Source of the DNA: Lepidodermella squamata
Lineage: Eukaryota; Animalia; Gastrotricha
NCBI GenBank assembly: GCA_047495785.1
Contig: JBLDXI010000048.1
Location: 682,001-746,000 of the forward strand
Reading direction: 5' to 3'
DNA length: 64,000 nt
Below are positions 18,858-34,567 of this stretch, piece after piece. The notes under the pieces were generated by a model that ran no database searches, had not been told where the DNA came from, and was given only the letters and a program-made list of their open reading frames with translations. Within the stretch, counting starts at the first letter, position 1. Every line of letters begins with the position of its first letter. Position numbers and translations under genes: made by a program.

Positions 18858-21800
18858 ATGAGCGAAGATAGTTTAAATCTACAACTTCTATACTTCGATG
18901 CGTCCTTATTTCCTGATATCATTCAGAGTCGGGCGATCGTCGTCAAGGCTGGAATGTGCGCTGAAGACGTCCTGCGGAGATGCGCTGAGGAATTACATTT
19001 ATCAGCTCATTCGTTTCCATTTTTCGGTCTACTGGTGAAACCCAAGCCATCTGCCGTTTCAATGGAAACTTATTGGCTCACCCCCAACACGAATTTCAAT
19101 ATCTTATTGAAGCTGTCAGCAACGCATGATTTCTACTTTCGGTTTAGATTCAAGCCTGCTCGTGGTCTCATGCGTTTTGCTCAAAATCGATGCAAAGTTT
19201 TGGGTAAACATTACGGATTTCGTGCCCTGTTGCAACAAAGCATTGTTATGTCTGATAATTTATGGATGCTACTTCTCGGACAATGCGAAAACGACTTGAA
19301 TGAAGAAACGTACAGTATATTGAAGATGAAAGATTCAGCTAGAGGAGATCGGGAAGTTCGCGGCGACTTGTGGGCTCTCCGTGTTATGAGTAGGTCCAAT
19401 TCAACTAGGATTTGTCTGAAATGGGATATCAACAGTATTGCTGGTTGCTTGCCGGAAAAGCTGCGAAATAAAAAGGACTTTCTTCGAGATGTTAAAGAGT
19501 GTCTCGCCGATGCAACGCGCAAATTCAGCGCACTGTCTCTGCACGACATTTACATCACTTTTCTTGAAGAATATGTCTACGAAAATGCTACCAGGCTCAT
19601 ACAGCGCTTTAATGTTGAATATGAAGACTTCGGCGAAGGTGTGACTTACATCGACACTCAGGAATGTAATTGCTACCCGGCTGTCCGATTTGCGGGCCGG
19701 AATACTTCTCAAATCAGGGAGATTTGCACTCTGAAAGACCTGAATGGTTTTTCAATTTCCGATAATATTGTTAAGCTTCATTTAAAACGACTAGGCGACA
19801 TTTGTTCTCTGAAATTCACCACCAAGAACCAGGCTGAATCTTTTGCGTCTGAAGTGGATGCTCAGTACCGAACGTGTGTGGATTGGTACGGAAATTTGTG
19901 TCTGAATTTACCTCAGTCGGTCTACTCGCCTCGAATTGCGAGCTTAAAACTGAATTTCGTCATGCCATCGGCTAGTTTAAGCAACAACTCGCCTGGAATT
20001 CGCATCACTGACAACGTTCCATCTTCCCTCTTCAAATTTCGCCCATTTATTTTGCAACAGAGCAGCCAGAAAGTCGGAAATGTCAAGGTTGAATTTTCGA
20101 ACGCGGTTAAAAACTACGGTGAATTCTACTGGCAACTTCGCATTATATTGAACGCGGACGGCGCATGGCAAATTCGTGAAAATTCTGGCTCGATCGATTT
20201 CGAGGATAATCGGGATTTACTACAAGATTTTTTGTCCTTGCAAGACGCATGTCAAGCTTTGTTGACTAATATCGCTAATAGACTGGGAGGTCTATCAGGA
20301 AGATGGCTGCCGACATCTATTGACGAGAAGGAAATAATGGTACGATTGGGTCACATTGGCCGTTCACCGCGCATTCATTTCATCGATCCTGAATTGATTG
20401 AGGTGAGCGAAATTCCGCGATTTTTCGCCAAATATTAAGGCCAGCGCGTTTTATATGATGCCATAAGGAATAAAACGGCCAAGAGGTCACGATTCATATC
20501 ATAACCGGTCATATCACCTTGCGCACAGGGCTAATTATCGAAATATTACGCCATCACTCACTCATTGTCGCGCGCGGTTTATTGCACCCTATTATATGTA
20601 TTGCACCAGCGCCGGGTCTGCCTGCTTATTGATGATGCCTATCTAACCCGGTATGACCCTTAATATTTGAAATCTAATATCGTTAGTTAACATTTTCCGG
20701 CAAACATTTAGTCATCTAATTATGCAATTTTCAAATACGTAAATGACCAAATATTAGCTATTTTTTCTTATTTCCCTTCAAGAATTTTTAACCGATTTTT
20801 GCTTTGTTTTAGGCTATAAAAGCCGATGGTAACAACTTACCTGTTCTCGCCTTTTCGGAGCAAGTAATTCGCATGGAAAACGTGGCAGACGGCGAATTTT
20901 CCCGCCTAGTTTTTGCCGCATGGGCCAACACCGGAAACCAGTATCTACTCCGAGAATACAACGGAACTCGTAACCATCTGCTATCCCGATTTTGGTCAGC
21001 CGCTGAAAAATGGGCGCAATTATCTTATTCCGGATTGGCTCAAATCGCCGCATTTTCGCCTGGAGCTGATTTTTACCTGCTCGAATTTGCGAGTGGCGGG
21101 CCGCTTGACGTTTATCTTAATTCTTGCAATTCAGCAATCTACCCGACTCATTTGCTTCTGACTATGAAGACCCTGTGCGATAGTCTTGTCTACTTCAAAG
21201 AGCGGAATTACACTCATGGCGATATTCGCCTGGCCAATGTTGTTTTGCTGAATCATACCATGGAACCGCCGATTTTATTCGAAGTGAAATTACTGCCGCC
21301 CGAGATAGATCAACGCGCCTTACCATCCGGCGCGGAACAACCGTTTTTTCTTCGCGATCGCGAAATTTTTTGGCCGCAAAATGGACCTAAAACCGACATT
21401 TACGCCCTCGGTGTTACTTTCATCCAGCTATTGAGGCTCGGTAGTGTTCCGACCCAGCAAGATTTGGCTGGTTTTCTCGACTCGCCCGAGCCTAATTTAG
21501 CGAATTTTCTCGATCGATTCGCTGAATTTCAGCCTGAATTTATCAAATTATTTCAGCGAATTTTTGATTTGATAAAAACTATGCTAGTCAAAGTTGATGG
21601 GGACATCGATTTTGTGCGCGATATTTCGCGAAAAATAGACGAATTGGTAAATTATTGCCGAAATCTGCCACTGGTCGCCCTGAATAGCGCTTCCACCGAG
21701 TCTTCATCTATCGAGACTGAAATAAATCGCTACTACCACATTCCGTTTGAAAATATCGAGCCTGGTCCGAGGCTCAGTCACGGCCATTTCGGCGAGGTCA

Positions 21801-24777
21801 TTCGAGCGAGTTGGCGCCAGCAAAATACGGCTGGAGATGTGAAAATTTCCACTGTTGCGTTGAAACGATTGTTGCACGATCGACCTGATGATTTCCAACC
21901 GGCTTTCAGTCGATTGAATTCTGAGTTCATGATTTGGGTCAATTTGAAACACGAAAACAGTAAGTTTAACACTATGCCTGACTTTACTCTCAGTTGCATT
22001 TTTTCTTGCTCCGAAAATGAACGCGCGTAATATTAATCATTTTTTCCTAGAAAATGTGGGTAAACCTTGGGAAACATAATATCTTTTAGCAGAACTAAAT
22101 TAGGTGATGTTAGATTAGCCAAATGTCACTTTTCCAATGGGTTTATTTATCACTTGCGCTCAAATGTGTTATCACTTGCATATTTTTCTGGTAAAATGAC
22201 GCCAATCATCATTTTCGCAGCCAATAATTAAAAAATGTTATCAGGTATCAAATTTGTTTGATTCGGAACAATGGGTGCTATTGCTACGTACACAAGCCTA
22301 ACTCGAACGGTTCGGGTGTCGAAATTGATTTCAATAGTTTTACTATTATAAACATCACATGCCTACGGAGGACGAAAAATAAAACTGATTCATTTGGTCA
22401 TACTATTATAAATTATCCTCCTTTCTGCTATCGCTAATTAAAGTACATTTTATCGATAACCAAAAGCGTTATCGCGATCGTCTCAGAGCAATATCAACTT
22501 TCCGACGAAATCCCGTCAACTGCTCTTAGTTCTTACGAAATTCACTACGAAGGTTCAAGGTTCAACTAAGGCCAGGAAGCAGCTCTGCTTCCATGGGGAC
22601 CATTTTCATCTCTGAACACAAAATTAAAAATCCCCACTAAGAAAATCAATTTCAGTGCGCGCATTGAGCCCATTAAAAGTTTATATCGATGAGGACGGCT
22701 CGCTTGAAATCCGAGGCTGCAAAATCAGACTAAATACTCACGGCCCTTCTACCCGCGCTCTTGCAGCCGATTTGTGGTAACCCTGCCCCAAGTCGCAAGT
22801 CATCTGGTTGACAATTTAATTTAATAAAATGCGATAAAATTTTTGTAATTATCAGCTACGAAAATGATGCTTGGGGTAATTTTACTAGAAAAATACGGAA
22901 GTGAGGGTATTTCTCTCTAATATTTCTACGAAAATAAGACTATAAATTCTATAGTGAAGAACGCGTCTTATACAGAGTTTTAAGCTGAAATTAAAGATGA
23001 TTTATTACGAATTTCGCTGATCAAGCATGACTTCCCTGGAAGTCTCGAAAAGTGGTTTAGGCCCATCGAAAATTTCAAAATTTGGTCCCCTACCCTACAG
23101 TCAAATTTGGTTCCGCTAAAAGACGCTTTAGGAAAAGCGGCTTATCTTTTGCACCTGAATCTTTTGAACTGATCAACGCGAAAAAATTCAGTGCCTTGTT
23201 TTTCTAATACATACTAGTCATGGTATGATATTATCTTTGATTTGTTTATAGTTATTCGAGTTTACGGCATGACCTATTTCGACGGCCGACCCGGTATCGT
23301 GATGGAGTTCATCGAAAACGCCCTGACTCTGGAAAAATATTCAAAGGGCAAATCTCATCGTGATTCTGCGTTTTTTCGCGAAATGACCGGTTTATTAATT
23401 CAGGTTGGCTTCTTTTAAGAATATTTGGTTCGTCATCATTGTGAATTATAATGAATTTTAATTGAACATTTTTCGGAAAGTATGTGGAAATCGAATTCTC
23501 AATTAAGTTTAGGAACACCGGCACCTACTATTTTTTCAATAGTGAACTAAAGACCAACATTTGAAATGGCTCGAGTAAAATAATAATTAATTTTTGATAT
23601 CAACATTTTGCTTTTTTTATTCTGCGTCCCATGGCACTGGACTGGTATTTTTATTCAAGCTCTGTGATTTTCTACACCAACCAGAAATTTTATAAATTTG
23701 CGAAATTTATCAAATAATTGATTTCTAATAATTTGTTTACGGGGTAATCCAATTCATATTTTTTTTTCTCTTGAAAAATCAGCTCATAATTTTGTCCCAT
23801 TGAAATTTGAAAATTCAGTAATAACTGTCCTGTGTTCAATGGCACCTTGAATCCCTGCGCCCAGTCAAAACTCGAGTGTAATCGTATAGTAGTCAGCGAA
23901 AGAGAATGATCATTTTTTTTCTGGCATCAATTCACCTGTTAAATTTCATATACGTGGTTGTTTTAAGTGCTACAAATATCCGAGTCTGGCGTTCCCATAG
24001 TTCCATAAATGTTTGCCTTGCCACCCCAGGCCGATCTCCTAGAGCTTTCTGATATAGCTTGAAAATTCGATTCAAGTTGTACCACGACACCAAAAAGCTT
24101 GGTTGTAACGCTCCTGCATTTTTTCGATTTTTTCTTTTTGTGGCGTGTTCCCCGAAAATACCTAAAATTATTTAAGAATATTACATAGCTCGAGATCTTA
24201 CGACGAAAAATCTCGATTTCTGTTGCAAGTTTCGCAAGTGTCGGTTTTCTCATTTATCAGTCTCAAATAACTGAATTTTCTAATTTTTATTGAATTTTTA
24301 AAGGTCACGAAAGGAATGCAGCATTTATCGAATCGCAACATGCCAATTGTGCACTGCGATTTGGCCGCAAGAAACGTCCTCATCCAACAGCTGCCTCAAA
24401 ACAACGGCTCGCCTAATCTAGTCGCAAAAATCGGCGATTTTGGATTAGCTTGCTTGGTCGATACTTCTTCGACGTACCGCCGACTACCCGCTCAGCAGGA
24501 AATGCCGAGACCATGGTGCGCCCCGGAGGTGCTGGGCGAGTGCCGCGCGACCCCAGCGTCTGATGTTTTCAGTTTCGGCGTGCTAACTCTGGAGGTTATC
24601 TGTCAAAAGTCGCCGAAAAAACCGCCTGTTTTTGACGACCCGCGAACGCATCTATTCGAGAGAGATACCCCGTCTAAATTGCGAGAAATTATGTTGAAAT
24701 GCTGGCAATTTCGCCCCGAAGAACGGCCGAATTTCCAGATGTTGGAAGTGTTTTTGAACGCGTTTTATCAGGGCTGA
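18858..24777 (+). CDS. JAK: Janus-kinase-like tyrosine kinase, copy A (FERM, SH2-like, pseudokinase, kinase); non-RD
   Basis: Exons 18858-20402, 20813-21959, 23252-23403, 24304-24777. FERM motifs AEDVLRRCAEEL..FFGL..YWLTPN..FRFRF and AESFASEVDAQYR; pseudokinase HGDIRLANV; kinase GHFGEV, VALK, HCDLAARN, DFG, WCAPE, SDVFSFG, CW..PEERPNF. Confidence 0.88.
22172..22904. mobile_element. MITE-like element with about 70-bp imperfect TIRs in JAK-A intron 2
   Basis: tcacttgcatatttttctggtaaaatgacgccaatcatcattttcg... pairs with ...cgaaaatgatgcttggggtaattttactagaaaaatacggaagtga; absent from the 269-nt equivalent intron of copy B. Confidence 0.7.
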
Positions 24778-27396: not shown

Positions 27397-28944
27397 AAAT
27401 ATCATATTTTTTGGAAAAATTCTAAATTTTTCATCTTCTGCAAATGAACAAAAATTTGGATTTTATCAAGTCTACCACTTCGATGAGTATCTTCCTTGAT
27501 AGTCTGGTGCCCGGCTAGTAACGCAACTGAAACAAATCCCATTTTTCAGGAAAGTAAAAATTTTCCAGGCCCGCCGATATTTCATCGGCGCGCGCCTGCT
27601 GGTTTGTCGTCACGGCCAATGCCGCCGCCGCTCGCTGGCTCGCTCGCTTGCTTTCTGCTCGCATTGCATAAAGTCAATAGCGCACGCGACTTGCGACGAG
27701 ACCTAACAACGCTTTATTCAAATCATTTCAAAAACTGTCAAAGCTGAGTGCTTGCACTCAGCAGAGGTCAAGCGCTATTAACAAGAAACGCTTAAATACT
27801 TCGATTAATTAATTTTGAAAAAATACAAGAAAAGACAAGACATAAATAACGGAGAGGGTGGAATGCCGTTTCTCATTCCTTGTGCCTGACTTCATCAAAG
27901 CCTTGGCGAGCCAAGATTTCATCGCCATGACGCTAGCGCCTACGAGCGTTGATCGCCGATGGCTGAATTTGTTCGCTTGCTTCAAAAGCCCGCTGTTCCA
28001 TTTGTTTTCAGCGATGAGACGTTTGACTTTGGCGCGCATAGCTCTGAAATTGCCGATTTATTTCTCTGCGAATCCGCCGTTGTTGTCTGCATTCACGCCG
28101 GTTTCTGGCTCAATAGTCATAGAATTTGTTTCGCTGTTGTCGGAAGCATTTTTTGTAATCGAGAGTTCCAACAGCCTTGCGGCTTGTAGGCTGAGAAACA
28201 GTCTAAGTGGCAACCCCGATGGGACATTTAAACTTGCCATTTGATCCGTGCTCCTTGAAGGACCCGTGTCGAAGGCTAACGTCGCTCAGCTCCGCATGTT
28301 GCTGTTAAGTTTTCATTGCCACCTGAAGTGAATCGCCATCATCCGGCAGCCTAATTAGTGTACCGATCGGGATTATTTCTTTGATGGACTCAGACAATCC
28401 TGCTCGGGAGCTGGAACTGGTAGTTCAGAAACCGAATATATTTGCAGTTAGCTATTTTGAATACCTTAGCAAAGGTGATTCCGCTCGGCCGCCCTGCTAA
28501 CATGGTTTCTAGCGGAGCATGAAATGCTTCAAGGAACTATGCCTCGAGGCTAGAACAGGTAAAATGAGAGTAAGATACGTGAACCCAAGCAACTGAAGTT
28601 GTAAAAAGAGGAAACCAGTTCAGCCTTGACCCTCCCTGGTTGGTCGGTATAGCTATACCCAAAACGTGTTTCCCTGCCTGGTTAGGTGAAACAAAATCGA
28701 ATTCAGCTTTAAAATTATTTTCGACGCTTATTGCTTGCGTATATTGCTGCGTCTTCTTTGTTGCGTCTATCATGTTTGATCTGGTGTAACCATATGTCAT
28801 ATGAAACAATCAACTTGTTTACTCTCCATTATCATGGGCTTTCATTGCTTTGATGAGCCCGTGTCCCTCAATCTCCCTACTACTCCTAAGCTGTCACTGA
28901 TTTTCATTGATAGTCGCTTACTTCATACATTGGGATCTGCCAAA

Positions 28945-31900
28945 ATGAGCGAAGACACTCTAAATCTGCAAATTTTATACTTCGACGCGTCATCATTTCC
29001 TGATATCATTCAGAGTCAGCCAATCGTCGTCAAGGCTGGAATGTGCGCTGAAGACGTCCTGCGAAGTTGCGCCGAGGAATTGCATGTATCGGCTTATTCG
29101 TTTCCATTTTTTGGTCTGCAGGTGAAACCCAAGCTATCTGAGGCTTCGACGGAAACGTATTGGCTCACTCCCAACTCGAATTTCAATGTATTAATGCAGC
29201 TGTCAGCAACGCATGATTTCTACTTTCGGTTTAGATTCAAGCCTGCTCGTGGTCTCATGCGTTTTGCCCAAAATCGATGCAAAGTTTTGGGTAAACATTA
29301 CGGATTTCGAGCCCTTTTGCAACAAAGCAATGACATGTCCGATAACTTGTGGATGTTACTTCTCGGACAATGCGAAAACGACTTGAGTGAAGAAACGTAC
29401 AGCATATTGAAGATGAAGGATTCAGCTAGAGGAGATGAGGAAGTTCGCGGAGGTTTGTGGGCTCTCCGTGTTATGAGCAGATCCAGCTCAACTAAGAAGC
29501 GACTACATTTGAGTACTGATTTTGTCCTTGGTTGGTTGCCAGAAAAACTGCGCAAAAAAATCGGCTACCTCCGCAGTTCCAACCCCTCTATAATGTGTGT
29601 GAAATGGGACTTCAACAGTATCGCCGGTTGCTTGCCGGAAAAGCTACGAAATAAAAAGGACTTCCTTCGAGATGTCAAAGAGTGCCTCGCCGACGCGACG
29701 CGCAAATTCAGTGGACTGTCTCTGCGCGCCATTAACTTCACTTTTCTGGAAGAATATGTCTACGAAAATGCCACCAGGCTCATACAGCGCTTTAATGTTG
29801 AATATGAAGACTTCGGCGAAGGTGTGACTTACATTGACACTCAGGAGTGTAATTGCTACCCGGCTGTCCGATTCGCTGGCCGGAATACCTCTCAAATCAG
29901 GGAGATCTGCACTCTGAAAGACCTGAATGGCTTTTCAATTTCCGAGAATGTTGTTAAGCTTCATTTAAAACGACTAGGCGACATTTGCTCTCTGAAATTT
30001 ACCACCAAGAATCAGGCTGAATCTTTTGCGTCTGAAGTGGATGCTCAGTACCGAACATGTGTGGATTGGTACGGCAATTTGTGTCTGGACACACCTCAGT
30101 CGGTCTACTCGCCCCGAATTGCCACCTTAAAACTGAATTTTGTCATGCCATCAGCTAGTTTGAGAATCAACTCGCCTGGAATTCGCATTACCGACAACGT
30201 TCCATCTTCTCTCTTCAAATTCCGCCCATTTATTTTGCAACAGAGCAGCCAGAAAGTCGGAAATGTCAAGGTTGAATTTTCGAACGCGGTTAAAAATTAC
30301 GGCGGATTCTATTGGCAACTTCGTATTATATTGAACGCGGACGGCGCATGGCAAATTCGAGGAAGTTCTGGCTCGATCAATTTCGAGGAAAACCGGGATT
30401 TATTACAAGATTTTTCGTCTCTGCAAGACGCTTGTCAAGCTTTGTTGACTAACATCGCTAAAAGACTGAATGGTCTATCAGGAAGATGGCTCCCCACATC
30501 TATTGATGAGAAGGAAATAATGGTTCGATTGGGTCACATTGGCCGTTCTCCTCGTGTTCATTTCATCGACCCAGAATTAATTGAGGTAAGCAAAATTTGG
30601 AGGAATATTTCAAACCTTCAGCAAACGTTAGAAAACATATTTTCCGTCAGCAACTGAAGCCCTATTATTTTTATTAAGATTGTAAGTGATTAGCGACCGC
30701 TAGAGCTGTTATAAGTGAGGAGCGCACACATAAGCAGCACAATCAAATTACTTGAGTTTAATCGACGCTTATTTACCTAAATTTGGGGGAAAGTCTTCCG
30801 TTTATGCGCCTCGGCGAACTCGCGCTAGCGTTTATTTATTTATTTTATTCATTTATTTTTATTTGACATGCAATTATCGCACTTGCGATTGTAGCAAACA
30901 GTAAAACAGAAAAAGAAAGATAATTTTTCACGTATTACGGCGCCTCACTGACGACACAAGATGTTTATCAATATCAATATTCATAAGAAATTTTTTAAAT
31001 GAATTGGGTTGGACTCCGAACCCACATAAATCGACGCAGCTTAGCAGCAAGGAGCTGCGCGCAAAATGTCGGACATTACGTCTCTGGTCTGAAATCAAAG
31101 CTGGGCGATGGCGTGTTGATGTTATCCGCGATACCAGGTGCTAGCTCAAAGCTCTCCTACAAAATAACGAAATAACAATCTGGTTACAGATTGAAAAATT
31201 ACGAAAACGAACATTAGAGTCCGACATTAGAAAGAGATTTTCGGCTGTGTCGAAGATGTACCTGGTTGATTTTAGCGAGGGCCAACAGTTCGAAGCTCCA
31301 CGACTGGTTCAATTGCAGCCGCAACTGCGGCATCCGAATAGATTTTCTTAGATCGCCCAGGCTTACGCTTTGTTGGGGTGGGGAGACAATCCATCAGTCG
31401 ATCGATGACGCCTGAGATGCCCTTGACGATCGACCAGTTTTTCCCGACTTGCCAGATGACGTTCGCGACTTGGCTTTCGTTTTGCGCGCTTTTCTTCCTG
31501 GAATAGGATTAATGCTGGCAACGATCCTGAAACCTCCAATGCAGGTCGTCGAGCTCGACTGTGAGTGCTGGACGGCCTGAGCCACTCTGCGAAACAGCTC
31601 GCCAGTCACTTGGTATCTCATCGATGCGAGGCAGGTGCTTGGTTATGGTGGAATGAATAAAGGGGCCTTTTTCGACCCAGGTTTACAAGTGCAGGCATGG
31701 AAGGTCACAACAGTCCTCTGTCATCTGGGCGCTACTTGCGCCGGGTTCGGATGACGGATGACATAATCTGGTCTTTAGAGGGCAATTTGTTATCCAAGAA
31801 TGAGCCAAATATTCCCATCTTGCTCCCCGGTGTACAACGTCGACAGATACTGTGACCTTGAGACTGTTATTGCTTATCTATGAGCCAACAAAATCGACAT

Positions 31901-34217
31901 TGATTTGGGGAAACTTCTATGATAGAATCAGGCTGAATGCTGTCTATACAGAGCAATTACAATACATCACTTTTATATCCTCCTTTATACTATTACTTAT
32001 ATAAGTTTTATGTTTTATTCATTTGTTTGTTTTGATTAAGGCTATCAATGCTGATGGTAACAACTTACCTGTTCTCGCCTTCTCGGAGCAAGTAATTCGC
32101 ATGGAAAATGTAGCAGACGGGCAATTCTCCCGCCTAATTTTTGCCGCATGGGCCAACACCGGAAACCAGTATCTACTCCGAGAATACAACGGAACTCGAG
32201 ACCATTTGCTCTCTCGATTTTTTTCAACCGCTGAAAAATGGGCGCAATTATCTTATTCTGGTCTAGCTCAAATCGCCGCATTCTCGACTGGAGCTGATTT
32301 TTACCTGCTCGAATTTGCGAGTGGCGGCCCGCTTGACGTTTATCTCAATTCTTGCAATTCAGCAATCTACCCGACTCATTTGCTTCTGACTATGAAGACG
32401 CTGTGCGACAGTCTTGTCTACTTTAAAGAGCGCAATTACACTCATGGCGATATTCGCCTGGCCAATGTTGTTTTGCTGAATCATACCATGGAACCGCCGA
32501 TTTTATTCGAAGTGAAATTACTGCCGCCCGAGATAGATCAACGCGCCTTACCATCCGGCGCGGAACAACCGTTTTTTCTTCGAGATCGCAAAATTTTTTG
32601 GCCGGAAAATGGGCCTATAACCGACGTGTACGCCCTCGGTGTTACTTTCATCCAGCTTTTGAGGCTTGGTAGTGTTCCGACTCAACAAGATGTGGCCGGT
32701 TTTCTCGATTTGGACGAGCCAAATTTAGCGAATTTTCTCGATCGATTCGCCGATTTTCTGCCTGAATTCAAAAAATTATTTCGCCGAATTTTTGGTTTGA
32801 TCAAAACTCTGTTGATCGAAGTTGATGGGGACGTAGAATTTGTGCGCTATATTTCAATGCAGCTTGGTGAAATGGTTAATAATTGCCGAAATCTGCCGCT
32901 AGTCACCCTGAATAGCTTTTCCTCTGAATATTCTTCGATCGAGACTGAAATAAATCGCTACTACCACATTCCGTTTGAAAATATCGAGCCTGGTCCAAAG
33001 CTGAGTCAGGGCAGTTTCGGCGAGGTCATTCGAGCGAGTTGGCGGCAGCGAAATGCGACTGGCCATGTGAATGTTACGGCCGTTGCGTTGAAACGACCGT
33101 TGATAGATCGACCTGATGATTCTCAGCCCGCGTTTAGCCGACTGAATTCCGAGTTTATGATTTGGGTCAATTTGAAACACGAAAACAGTAAGTAAATTAT
33201 TGTCATTTTTCATCTGGCCAAAATTGTTTTTTCTTTAACCATAATTTTGTCCTGGAAATGTACAATTTTGGACATGATATCGGAAATATCTTTGTCCATC
33301 TGACCAGGAATTCGACCCTTTCAATAACCCAGTTTTAATAGTCTTATTACTTTCGGCTTAAAGTTGGAATTATTCCTCCACAATATTGTCCGATTATCCT
33401 TAGGATGCTCCTTGGGGAATACCTCTCTTGATAATATCTTTTTTTTTCAATTGAAGTCATTCAAGTTTACGGCATGACGTATGAAGACGGGCGACCCGGT
33501 ATCGTGATGGAGTATATCGAAAACGCATTAACTCTGGAAACATATTCGAAGAGCAAATCTCATCGTGATTCTGCGTTTTTTCGCGAAATGACCGGTTTAT
33601 TAATTCAGGTTGGCTTCTTCTAAGATTATTGACTCATCATTAAATTCATTTTACTTCAAAAAATTTCGAATTATTGTTTCTGTTTGAATAATTATTTCCC
33701 AATTGTATTTTAAATCTTAATTTAATCGATTTTTAATTTTAAGGTCACGAAAGGAATGCAGCATTTATCGAATCGCAATATGCCTATTGTCCACCGCGAC
33801 TTGGCCGCTAGAAACGTCCTCATCCAACCGTTGCCATTAAACAACGGCTCGCCAAATCTAGTCGCCAAAATCGGCGATTTTGGATTAGCTTGCTTGGTCG
33901 ATACTTCTTCGACCTACCGCCGACTATACGATACGTTTTTTTCGCCGCCACCGTGGTGTGCTCCAGAGGTGGAACGCTCATGCCGCGCGACCCCAGCTTC
34001 TGACGTGTTCAGTTTCGGTACGGTAACTCTGGAGGTCATCTGCCAAGTAACTCCCGAAGAAAGGCCTGTTGTCACTAAACCGCACACGCATTTATTCGAG
34101 AGAGATACCCCGCCTAAATTGCGAGAAATAATGTTGAAATGCTGGCAAAAGCGACCGGAAGATCGGCCAAATTTTCAAATGCTGGAAGTGTTTTTGAACG
34201 TGTTTTATCAGGGCTGA
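28945..34217 (+). CDS. JAK: Janus-kinase-like tyrosine kinase, copy B; canonical HRD
   Basis: Exons 28945-30585, 32041-33187, 33457-33608, 33744-34217; same intron positions and phases as copy A; HRDLAARN, DFG, WCAPE intact. Confidence 0.9.
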
Positions 34218-34567
34218 ATATTTTTTACGTGTCTTTCTATTTATTCTAGTTTTTGCGGTCAATTTTTATGAGCTCTGTCAAGACATAACTGCTCACATTC
34301 CGACGCTCTGTTGAGTTATAAAAGTGTTGTGATGGCTGAGAATATTTGTTACTGCAATTTTATTATTGACGATTAAAACATTTCATTCTCTCTCAAATGA
34401 CTTGAATTTTCACATTTTTCTGTTATTCTTAGGATATGCTTTTAAGATGACCTGATAAAAAATCGTGGCGGCTTTTTTTTCTCTACAAGTGGCGATATTT
34501 TTATAAAACATTATAGCATTCTTTTATTGATAGATTGGTAGATAGTATATTGAGTGAAAGAAGAAGA

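Follow-up and report, generated by a model that had tools for sequence, protein, structure and literature searches.

Clustered divergence of two tandem JAK-like kinase paralogs at the activation segment and the alphaF-alphaG loop in the gastrotrich Lepidodermella squamata

In RD kinases the Arg that precedes the catalytic Asp binds the activation-loop phosphate. The window analysed here is a 64,000-nucleotide stretch of the Lepidodermella squamata genome (GenBank assembly GCA_047495785.1, contig JBLDXI010000048.1, positions 682,001 to 746,000; features below are given in the coordinates of the window and lie on its forward strand), and it holds two head-to-tail JAK-like kinase paralogs, copy A (18858-24777, four exons, 1105 codons) and copy B (28945-34217, four exons, 1137 codons), which share the same exon layout. 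In substrate-bound kinase structures, positions 4-11, counted back from the end of the APE motif, touch the substrate, and in tyrosine kinases positions 8-11 form a short sheet with it (PMC10401967); the surface of vertebrate JAK1 to which SOCS1 binds is made up of its activation loop and alphaG, with a GQM motif at 1097-1099 (PMC5908791). An initial annotation of the window had started from the premise that the activation/P+1 loop and the alphaG region determine substrate choice and are bound by SOCS inhibitors, which agrees with these structures as far as substrate contact and SOCS1 on vertebrate JAK1 are concerned. From this it had proposed that the A/B differences are concentrated on the substrate-binding face of the kinase and that they reflect diversifying selection, either for new substrates or for escape from an inhibitor. 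We find that the differences are clustered on elements of that kind within the kinase C-lobe; the divergence, however, is lopsided, with most polarised changes derived in copy B, and not symmetric.

The two proteins align over 1105 residues, of which 130 differ. Exon 4, which encodes the kinase C-lobe, has no insertion or deletion between the copies, and most codons in three short stretches of this exon carry 2-3 changes each. The first stretch, patch 1 (24484..24510 in A and 33924..33950 in B), covers residues L1009-R1017 of the C-terminal activation loop and the P+1 loop; it reads LPAQQEMPR in A and LYDTFFSPP in B, and 15 of the 24 nucleotides of codons 1010-1017 differ. The second, patch 1b (24532..24540 in A, residues L1025-E1027), is the first turn of alphaEF after the APE motif, with LGE in A and ERS in B. 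The third, patch 2 (24607..24645 in A, residues K1050-R1062; 34047..34085 in B), reads KSPKKPPVFDDPR in A and VTPEERPVVTKPH in B, a difference at 10 of 13 residues that includes charge reversals from A to B (K,K to E,E and D,D to T,K). The peptides quoted in the initial annotation are present exactly in the translations of 24304-24777 (A) and 33744-34217 (B), and its description of the surroundings was accurate: the flanks are near-identical, the 60 nucleotides ahead of patch 1 having only 2 A/B differences, B has an extra activation-loop Tyr (YRRLY), and neither copy has the adjacent YY of typical JAKs, both having Y-R at those columns.

When the differences were permuted over the whole protein under a uniform null, the richest window of 15 residues had p=0.005 and the richest of 60 residues p=0.0002. 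In exon 4 the null was weighted by the entropy that each column shows in the C-lobes of 52 other tyrosine kinases; the two top windows of 15 residues still reach p=0.001, and residues 1009-1062 hold 21 of the 28 C-lobe differences, where 9.6 are expected. A uniform spread of the differences, the outcome that would have refuted the initial annotation, is rejected, and so is the weighted null. Concentration on the substrate-binding face stands within the C-lobe but is overstated for the gene as a whole, because two equally dense hot spots lie off that face. One, at residues 753-812, comprises the pseudokinase tail and the JH2-JH1 linker (21524..21703 in A; 21 differences, p=0.0002); the other, at residues 850-864, is the beta2-beta3 loop of the kinase N-lobe (21815..21859 in A), in which 8 of 15 residues differ and the ratio of nonsynonymous to synonymous divergence (omega, calculated here and below by NG86) is 0.68. 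With the activation-loop patch and the alphaF-alphaG patch, the A/B hot spots are four.

The location of the patches was examined on a structural model and by homology. The activation segment aligns to that of JAK1 without gaps in HMMER, placing Y1006 opposite JAK1 Y1034, and in patch 1 the changes occupy positions 7 and 9-14 when the count runs backwards from the end of APE; by homology, patch 1 is thus predicted to lie on the substrate-pairing strand. The AlphaFold model of exon 4 of A has a predicted local distance difference test score (pLDDT) of 93; in exon-4 numbering, alphaF spans 84-100, a loop follows over 101-112, and the next helix, 113-116, has only four residues. From these boundaries patch 2 is the alphaF-alphaG loop together with a vestigial alphaG, a region in which the pLDDT falls to 72-85. 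The differences thus map to the C-terminus of the activation segment and the P+1 loop on the one hand, and to the alphaF-alphaG loop and alphaG on the other, in keeping with what the initial annotation had suggested.

The direction of change was read from the sole ortholog-like sequence found in any collection, P0004, present on two metagenome contigs with 99.8% mutual identity and located at 9828-10322 of contig L008. Only one copy is present on this contig, and its neighbours on both sides are the genes that stand upstream and downstream of the pair in the window; because one copy stands there in conserved gene order, A and B are the products of a lineage-specific duplication. P0004 was the only ortholog-like match in a library of 1.8 billion representatives and the only sequence returned by an exon-4 profile search; a word search with exon 2 found no further outgroup, a metagenome scan gave nothing above 39% identity and run X3 (same study) nothing at 80% likeness. 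Of the A/B sites that could be polarised, 29 are derived in B and 10 in A (p=0.003). The bias differs along the protein, with B-derived and A-derived sites numbering 7 and 7 in exon 1 but 22 and 3 in residues 516-1105, and 8 and 0 in residues 753-840. Within the loop patch three sites are B-derived, none is A-derived and four match neither copy; in the alphaF-alphaG patch (1049-1062, 13 residues mapped) there is one of each and seven match neither; and in patch 1b all three residues differ between A, B and the outgroup. A is identical to the outgroup at 4 of the 9 residues of the loop patch (P, Q, M and P, in the pattern P..Q.MP), close to the 52% found over the C-lobe, whereas B, which reads YDTFFSP, is identical at only one of the nine. 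Moreover, the catalytic loop reads HCD in both A and the outgroup but HRD in B. Where A and B have Y-R in the activation loop, the outgroup has F-H and hence no loop tyrosine at all. As judged from these three sequences, B has rewritten the activation loop, which is kept in A and in the outgroup, and the alphaF-alphaG loop differs in all three.

The reading that we favour, and to which we give an even chance, is an asymmetric divergence of copy B, made up of a rewritten activation loop, a hypervariable alphaF-alphaG loop and a mosaic left by gene conversion. A divergent JAK-like kinase was duplicated in tandem within this lineage to give A and B, both intact, and the C-terminal half of B then evolved faster than that of A. 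In its course B replaced the C-terminal activation loop and P+1 strand still common to A and the distant single-copy ortholog; a Cys of its catalytic loop became Arg (HCD to HRD), and its activation loop acquired a second Tyr. We infer that these changes may have altered substrate choice, activation-loop control or both. The alphaF-alphaG loop is a short, flexible and weakly constrained surface loop, differing in three lineages, and intermittent gene conversion of the exons would keep most of A and B alike and so sharpen the contrast at the patches. Possibly, though we think it doubtful, the changes in B make up one concerted switch, from an ancestral non-RD kinase with a loop not controlled by phosphate to an RD kinase, the change from HCD to HRD, the new Tyr and the new P+1 strand belonging together.

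Several observations weigh against the asymmetric account or against placing it on a single face. The outgroup is single and about 40-52% identical, and therefore gives no direction of change for 83 of the 122 differing sites. Over the whole gene, the differences are densest, in windows of 60 residues, at 753-812 and not in the kinase C-lobe. The patches are tied to a substrate face by homology, which makes that face a predicted one. In the loop patch, omega above 1 falls short of significance, with p=0.10 for the patch by itself and p=0.07 when nearby silent sites are the reference. Finally, a third sequence type in read contigs (see below) could complicate the two-copy picture.

The divergence of B could instead reflect relaxed constraint alone, in which B, partly redundant, has drifted at its surface loops, the patches being the least constrained of these, and has acquired no new function. 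We consider this unlikely, although it has points in its favour: B is the faster copy overall, most of the A/B differing sites fall in columns that are variable among tyrosine kinases, and omega for the pooled patches is about 1. Moreover, if the introns show the true age of the duplication, neutral divergence is far above the exon silent value, and near-saturated patches need no acceleration. Many C-lobe columns of equal variability, however, show no A/B difference. Gene-wide omega is 0.19 (synonymous divergence, dS, 0.33; nonsynonymous divergence, dN, 0.065). B retains all catalytic motifs, a 1137-codon open frame, canonical splice sites and expression. In addition, the identity between A and the outgroup in the loop patch is at the average level for the C-lobe, which argues that this patch was formerly constrained.

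Diversifying selection on the whole substrate- or inhibitor-binding face, whether for new substrates or for escape from a SOCS-like or pathogen-derived inhibitor, is in our view rather improbable. It would account for clustering on substrate-binding elements that in vertebrate JAK1 also bind SOCS1 (PMC5908791, PMC10401967), for the many patch codons with 2-3 changes and for the charge reversals in the alphaF-alphaG patch. In the nine codons of the loop patch there are 13.8 nonsynonymous against 1.2 synonymous differences, an omega of about 7; the nonsynonymous density there exceeds the gene-wide divergence at 4-fold sites (p=4e-5), and 15 differences in 24 nucleotides have P=4e-5 at a neutral p-distance of 0.23, or 0.005 when corrected for 138 windows. 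Omega is 0.09 in exon 4 when the patches are taken out. However, the alphaF-alphaG patch has an omega of 0.53 and the three patches together one of 1.26, neither of which is above neutrality, and the alphaF-alphaG loop, with its lower pLDDT and its differences in three lineages, behaves as an unconstrained loop would. The equally dense hot spots away from the face also speak against selection on the face as such. With omega above 1 confined to the loop patch, where it is not significant, the diversifying selection proposed in the initial annotation is not demonstrated. Moreover, the conversion mosaic described below makes rate-based arguments for positive selection unsafe.

Escape from an inhibitor, also proposed there, is unsupported, and nothing points to a pseudosubstrate inhibitor of the SOCS1/3 type. 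Residues 1075-1118 of JAK1 are not aligned to exon 4, which has only 22 residues in their place and no GQM, so that the JAK insertion that bears this motif is absent. The genome has at least 150 SOCS-box matches over the Pfam cut-off and 27 SH2 matches, and none of the latter coincides by coordinate with a SOCS-box match. Neither an SH2 domain nor any other recognisable N-terminal domain was found in six SOCS-box genes examined. A search of 20 SH2 loci, with a profile derived from the SOCS boxes of this genome itself, found no box within about 3 kb (best E 0.29). Many of the SOCS-box matches stand in tandem arrays (for example, at 2.84-3.07 Mb of contig C7, 2.56-2.58 Mb of C32 and 1.11-1.14 Mb of C48). 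A single match to the STAT DNA-binding domain was also seen (C3:1021198-1021554; 29 bits, just over the cut-off), and the genome may therefore encode a STAT-like partner of these kinases.

One or a few complex mutational events, such as a multi-nucleotide replacement, template switching or a short conversion from a diverged donor, could have produced adjacent codons with 2-3 changes each between near-identical flanks (1012-1015, 1058-1060 and 788-791), but are very improbable, since there is no third close paralog and no donor for B's patch in the window (at up to 3 mismatches) or in the genome, the codon alignment shows by eye no frame-shifted or inverted versions, and length is exactly kept in every patch, as is seldom the case after deletion-insertion. 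An ectopic donor was rejected on the same lack of a match, and a compensated frameshift or micro-inversion because inspection of the codon alignment by eye showed no shifted or reverse-complement similarity.

Silent divergence between A and B is a mosaic. Among conserved codons, synonymous change reaches 0.33 in the segment 1005-1065 and 0.17 in the remainder (p=0.017). The 4-fold sites of the exons show a divergence of 0.23. The three intron pairs (20403-20812, 21960-23251 and 23404-24303 in A; 30586-32040, 33188-33456 and 33609-33743 in B) have no detectable similarity (z at most 1.5) and lengths that differ 3- to 7-fold; the 3' untranslated region still aligns. Because silent divergence is a mosaic, and because the introns are dissimilar while the exons are alike, the comparison suggests that gene conversion has homogenised the exons from time to time and has passed over the patches, which stand as islands. 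A tract of 149 nucleotides in the pseudokinase exon (codons 646-696; 21205-21353 in A, about 32433-32581 in B) is identical between genes that differ at 11% of coding sites (p<5e-5), and is probably a recent conversion tract.

The assignment of A and B to the JAKs was made from database and fold searches run exon by exon, joined coding sequences being used only for the A/B comparison. Exon 4 of A matches the Pfam family PK_Tyr_Ser-Thr, a tyrosine-kinase C-lobe, at E 2.6e-30 (2.1e-29 for B), and its top PDB sequence match is full-length JAK1 (E 2.4e-22); both copies have the DLAARN, DFG and APE motifs of a C-terminal tyrosine kinase, as expected of a JAK JH1 domain. Exon 2 of A matches the same family as a partial kinase fold (E 1e-12), with JAK1 residues 628-743, the JH2 domain, as its top PDB match (E 4.8e-8) and TYK2 JH2-JH1 as the third. 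It has HGD and LPPE where HRD and DFG are expected, which align to HGN and DPG in JAK1 JH2, and this pseudokinase stands directly before the kinase, as in JAKs. For exon 1, a profile of A, B and the outgroup has as its top PDB matches the FERM-SH2 regions of JAK2 (E 0.017, in two colinear stretches) and TYK2 (E 0.28), both weak; Pfam FERM_F1 and FERM_N score E 0.01-0.07, under their cut-offs, and the AlphaFold model of this exon (pLDDT 37) is too poor for use. JAK SH2-like domains are very divergent. Between the FERM region and the pseudokinase no Pfam SH2 match was obtained even at E up to 10, and residues 360-515 are covered by no stretch of the PDB profile matches. The tandem YY of the JAK activation loop is missing from A, B and the outgroup alike; its two columns are Y in 65% and Y in 80% of tyrosine kinases. 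A fold search with the C-lobe matched Src, Abl, Syk and JAK equally, indicating a generic tyrosine-kinase fold that is not diagnostic of JAK. Taken together, the PDB and Pfam matches of exons 4 and 2 and the weak FERM-SH2 matches of exon 1 identify A and B as a divergent JAK-like kinase with a FERM-like region, a JH2-like pseudokinase and a tyrosine kinase.

Both copies are expressed, B being spliced as modelled and A-type sequence occurring in the same RNA-like run. In run X2 the RNA-like contigs skip the introns, join B at 33187>33457 and at 33608>33744 (33606>33742, cut +2), at GT..AG, and include B-identical pieces as well as A-type sequence; a contig of run X1 matches B exactly over 33884-34300. 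One contig each in X1 and X2 carries a third sequence type on exon 4 of B (33833-33841 and 33943); it has a six-letter insertion in the kinase-insert loop, is A-type further downstream, and represents an allele of A or else a copy that the assembly lacks. In run X1, over 28900-34300, the word depth of B-identical contigs is about 45-53 and that of cross-mapping A-type contigs about 82-97; this could mean that, in that sample, B is heterozygous or hemizygous or that A has been collapsed.

In copy A, exon 1 (18858..20402; residues 1-515) opens with ATG and carries the divergent JAK-type FERM region in an open frame up to a GT donor; exon 2 (20813..21959; residues 516-897) carries the JH2-like pseudokinase, the linker and the start of the kinase N-lobe; exon 3 (23252..23403), with AG/GT boundaries and 90% identity to 33457-33608 of B, carries the kinase N-lobe and hinge; and exon 4 (24304..24777; residues 949-1105) carries the C-lobe with the HCD catalytic loop. 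The corresponding exons of B are 28945..30585, 32041..33187, 33457..33608 and 33744..34217, the last having the HRD catalytic loop. All splice sites in both genes are GT..AG and both reading frames are open. B is longer by 32 residues because exon 1 has an internal in-frame duplication of that length around the motif LPEKLR.K (at about 29495-29592), which A lacks. A and B are the only close copies in the 121-Mb genome; a third close paralog was rejected, the nearest other kinase being 43% identical.

As things stand, the locus shows ordinary asymmetric paralog divergence on surface loops, with the claim of selection unproven. If the new strand and the HRD Arg of B change specificity or regulation, the pair would nevertheless be a compact natural experiment in which a JAK-type kinase gained an output after duplication; and if the switch in B was concerted, A and B would form a natural before-and-after pair for the joint rise of phospho-dependent activation and a new substrate preference. 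The lineage is, moreover, poorly sampled, and its JAK is without the vertebrate hallmarks of YY, the GQM insertion and a full alphaG.

Three known systems offer a comparison. The contrast between non-RD and RD kinases is reproduced in that A and the outgroup are without an Arg before the catalytic Asp and B has one; here, however, the change in B is accompanied by a rewritten P+1 strand and a new Tyr, to which it may or may not be functionally coupled. As in tandem paralogs with a conversion mosaic, A stays near the ancestral state while B gathers changes at a functional surface, and long identical tracts alternate with diverged islands. The present case differs from these in that conversion is inferred from the pattern of two sequences only, and in that the introns of A and B have no detectable similarity, which is unusual if conversion tracts are long. 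Compared with the vertebrate JAKs, A and B have Y-R and not YY in the loop, an 8-residue kinase insert before beta8 and no SH2-like domain recognised by Pfam search; A, like the outgroup, has HCD and not HRD; and the segment from alphaF to alphaH has about 22 residues, against 44 in JAK1, with alphaG down to one turn. On the other hand, they have the same order of FERM-like region, JH2-like pseudokinase and tyrosine kinase as JAK1, JAK2 and TYK2, JAK1 is the top PDB sequence match for both of their kinase-like domains, their first loop Tyr, Y1006, pairs with JAK1 Y1034, and the patches at which they diverge fall on the activation loop and alphaG region, which in JAK1 is the surface for SOCS1 (PMC5908791).

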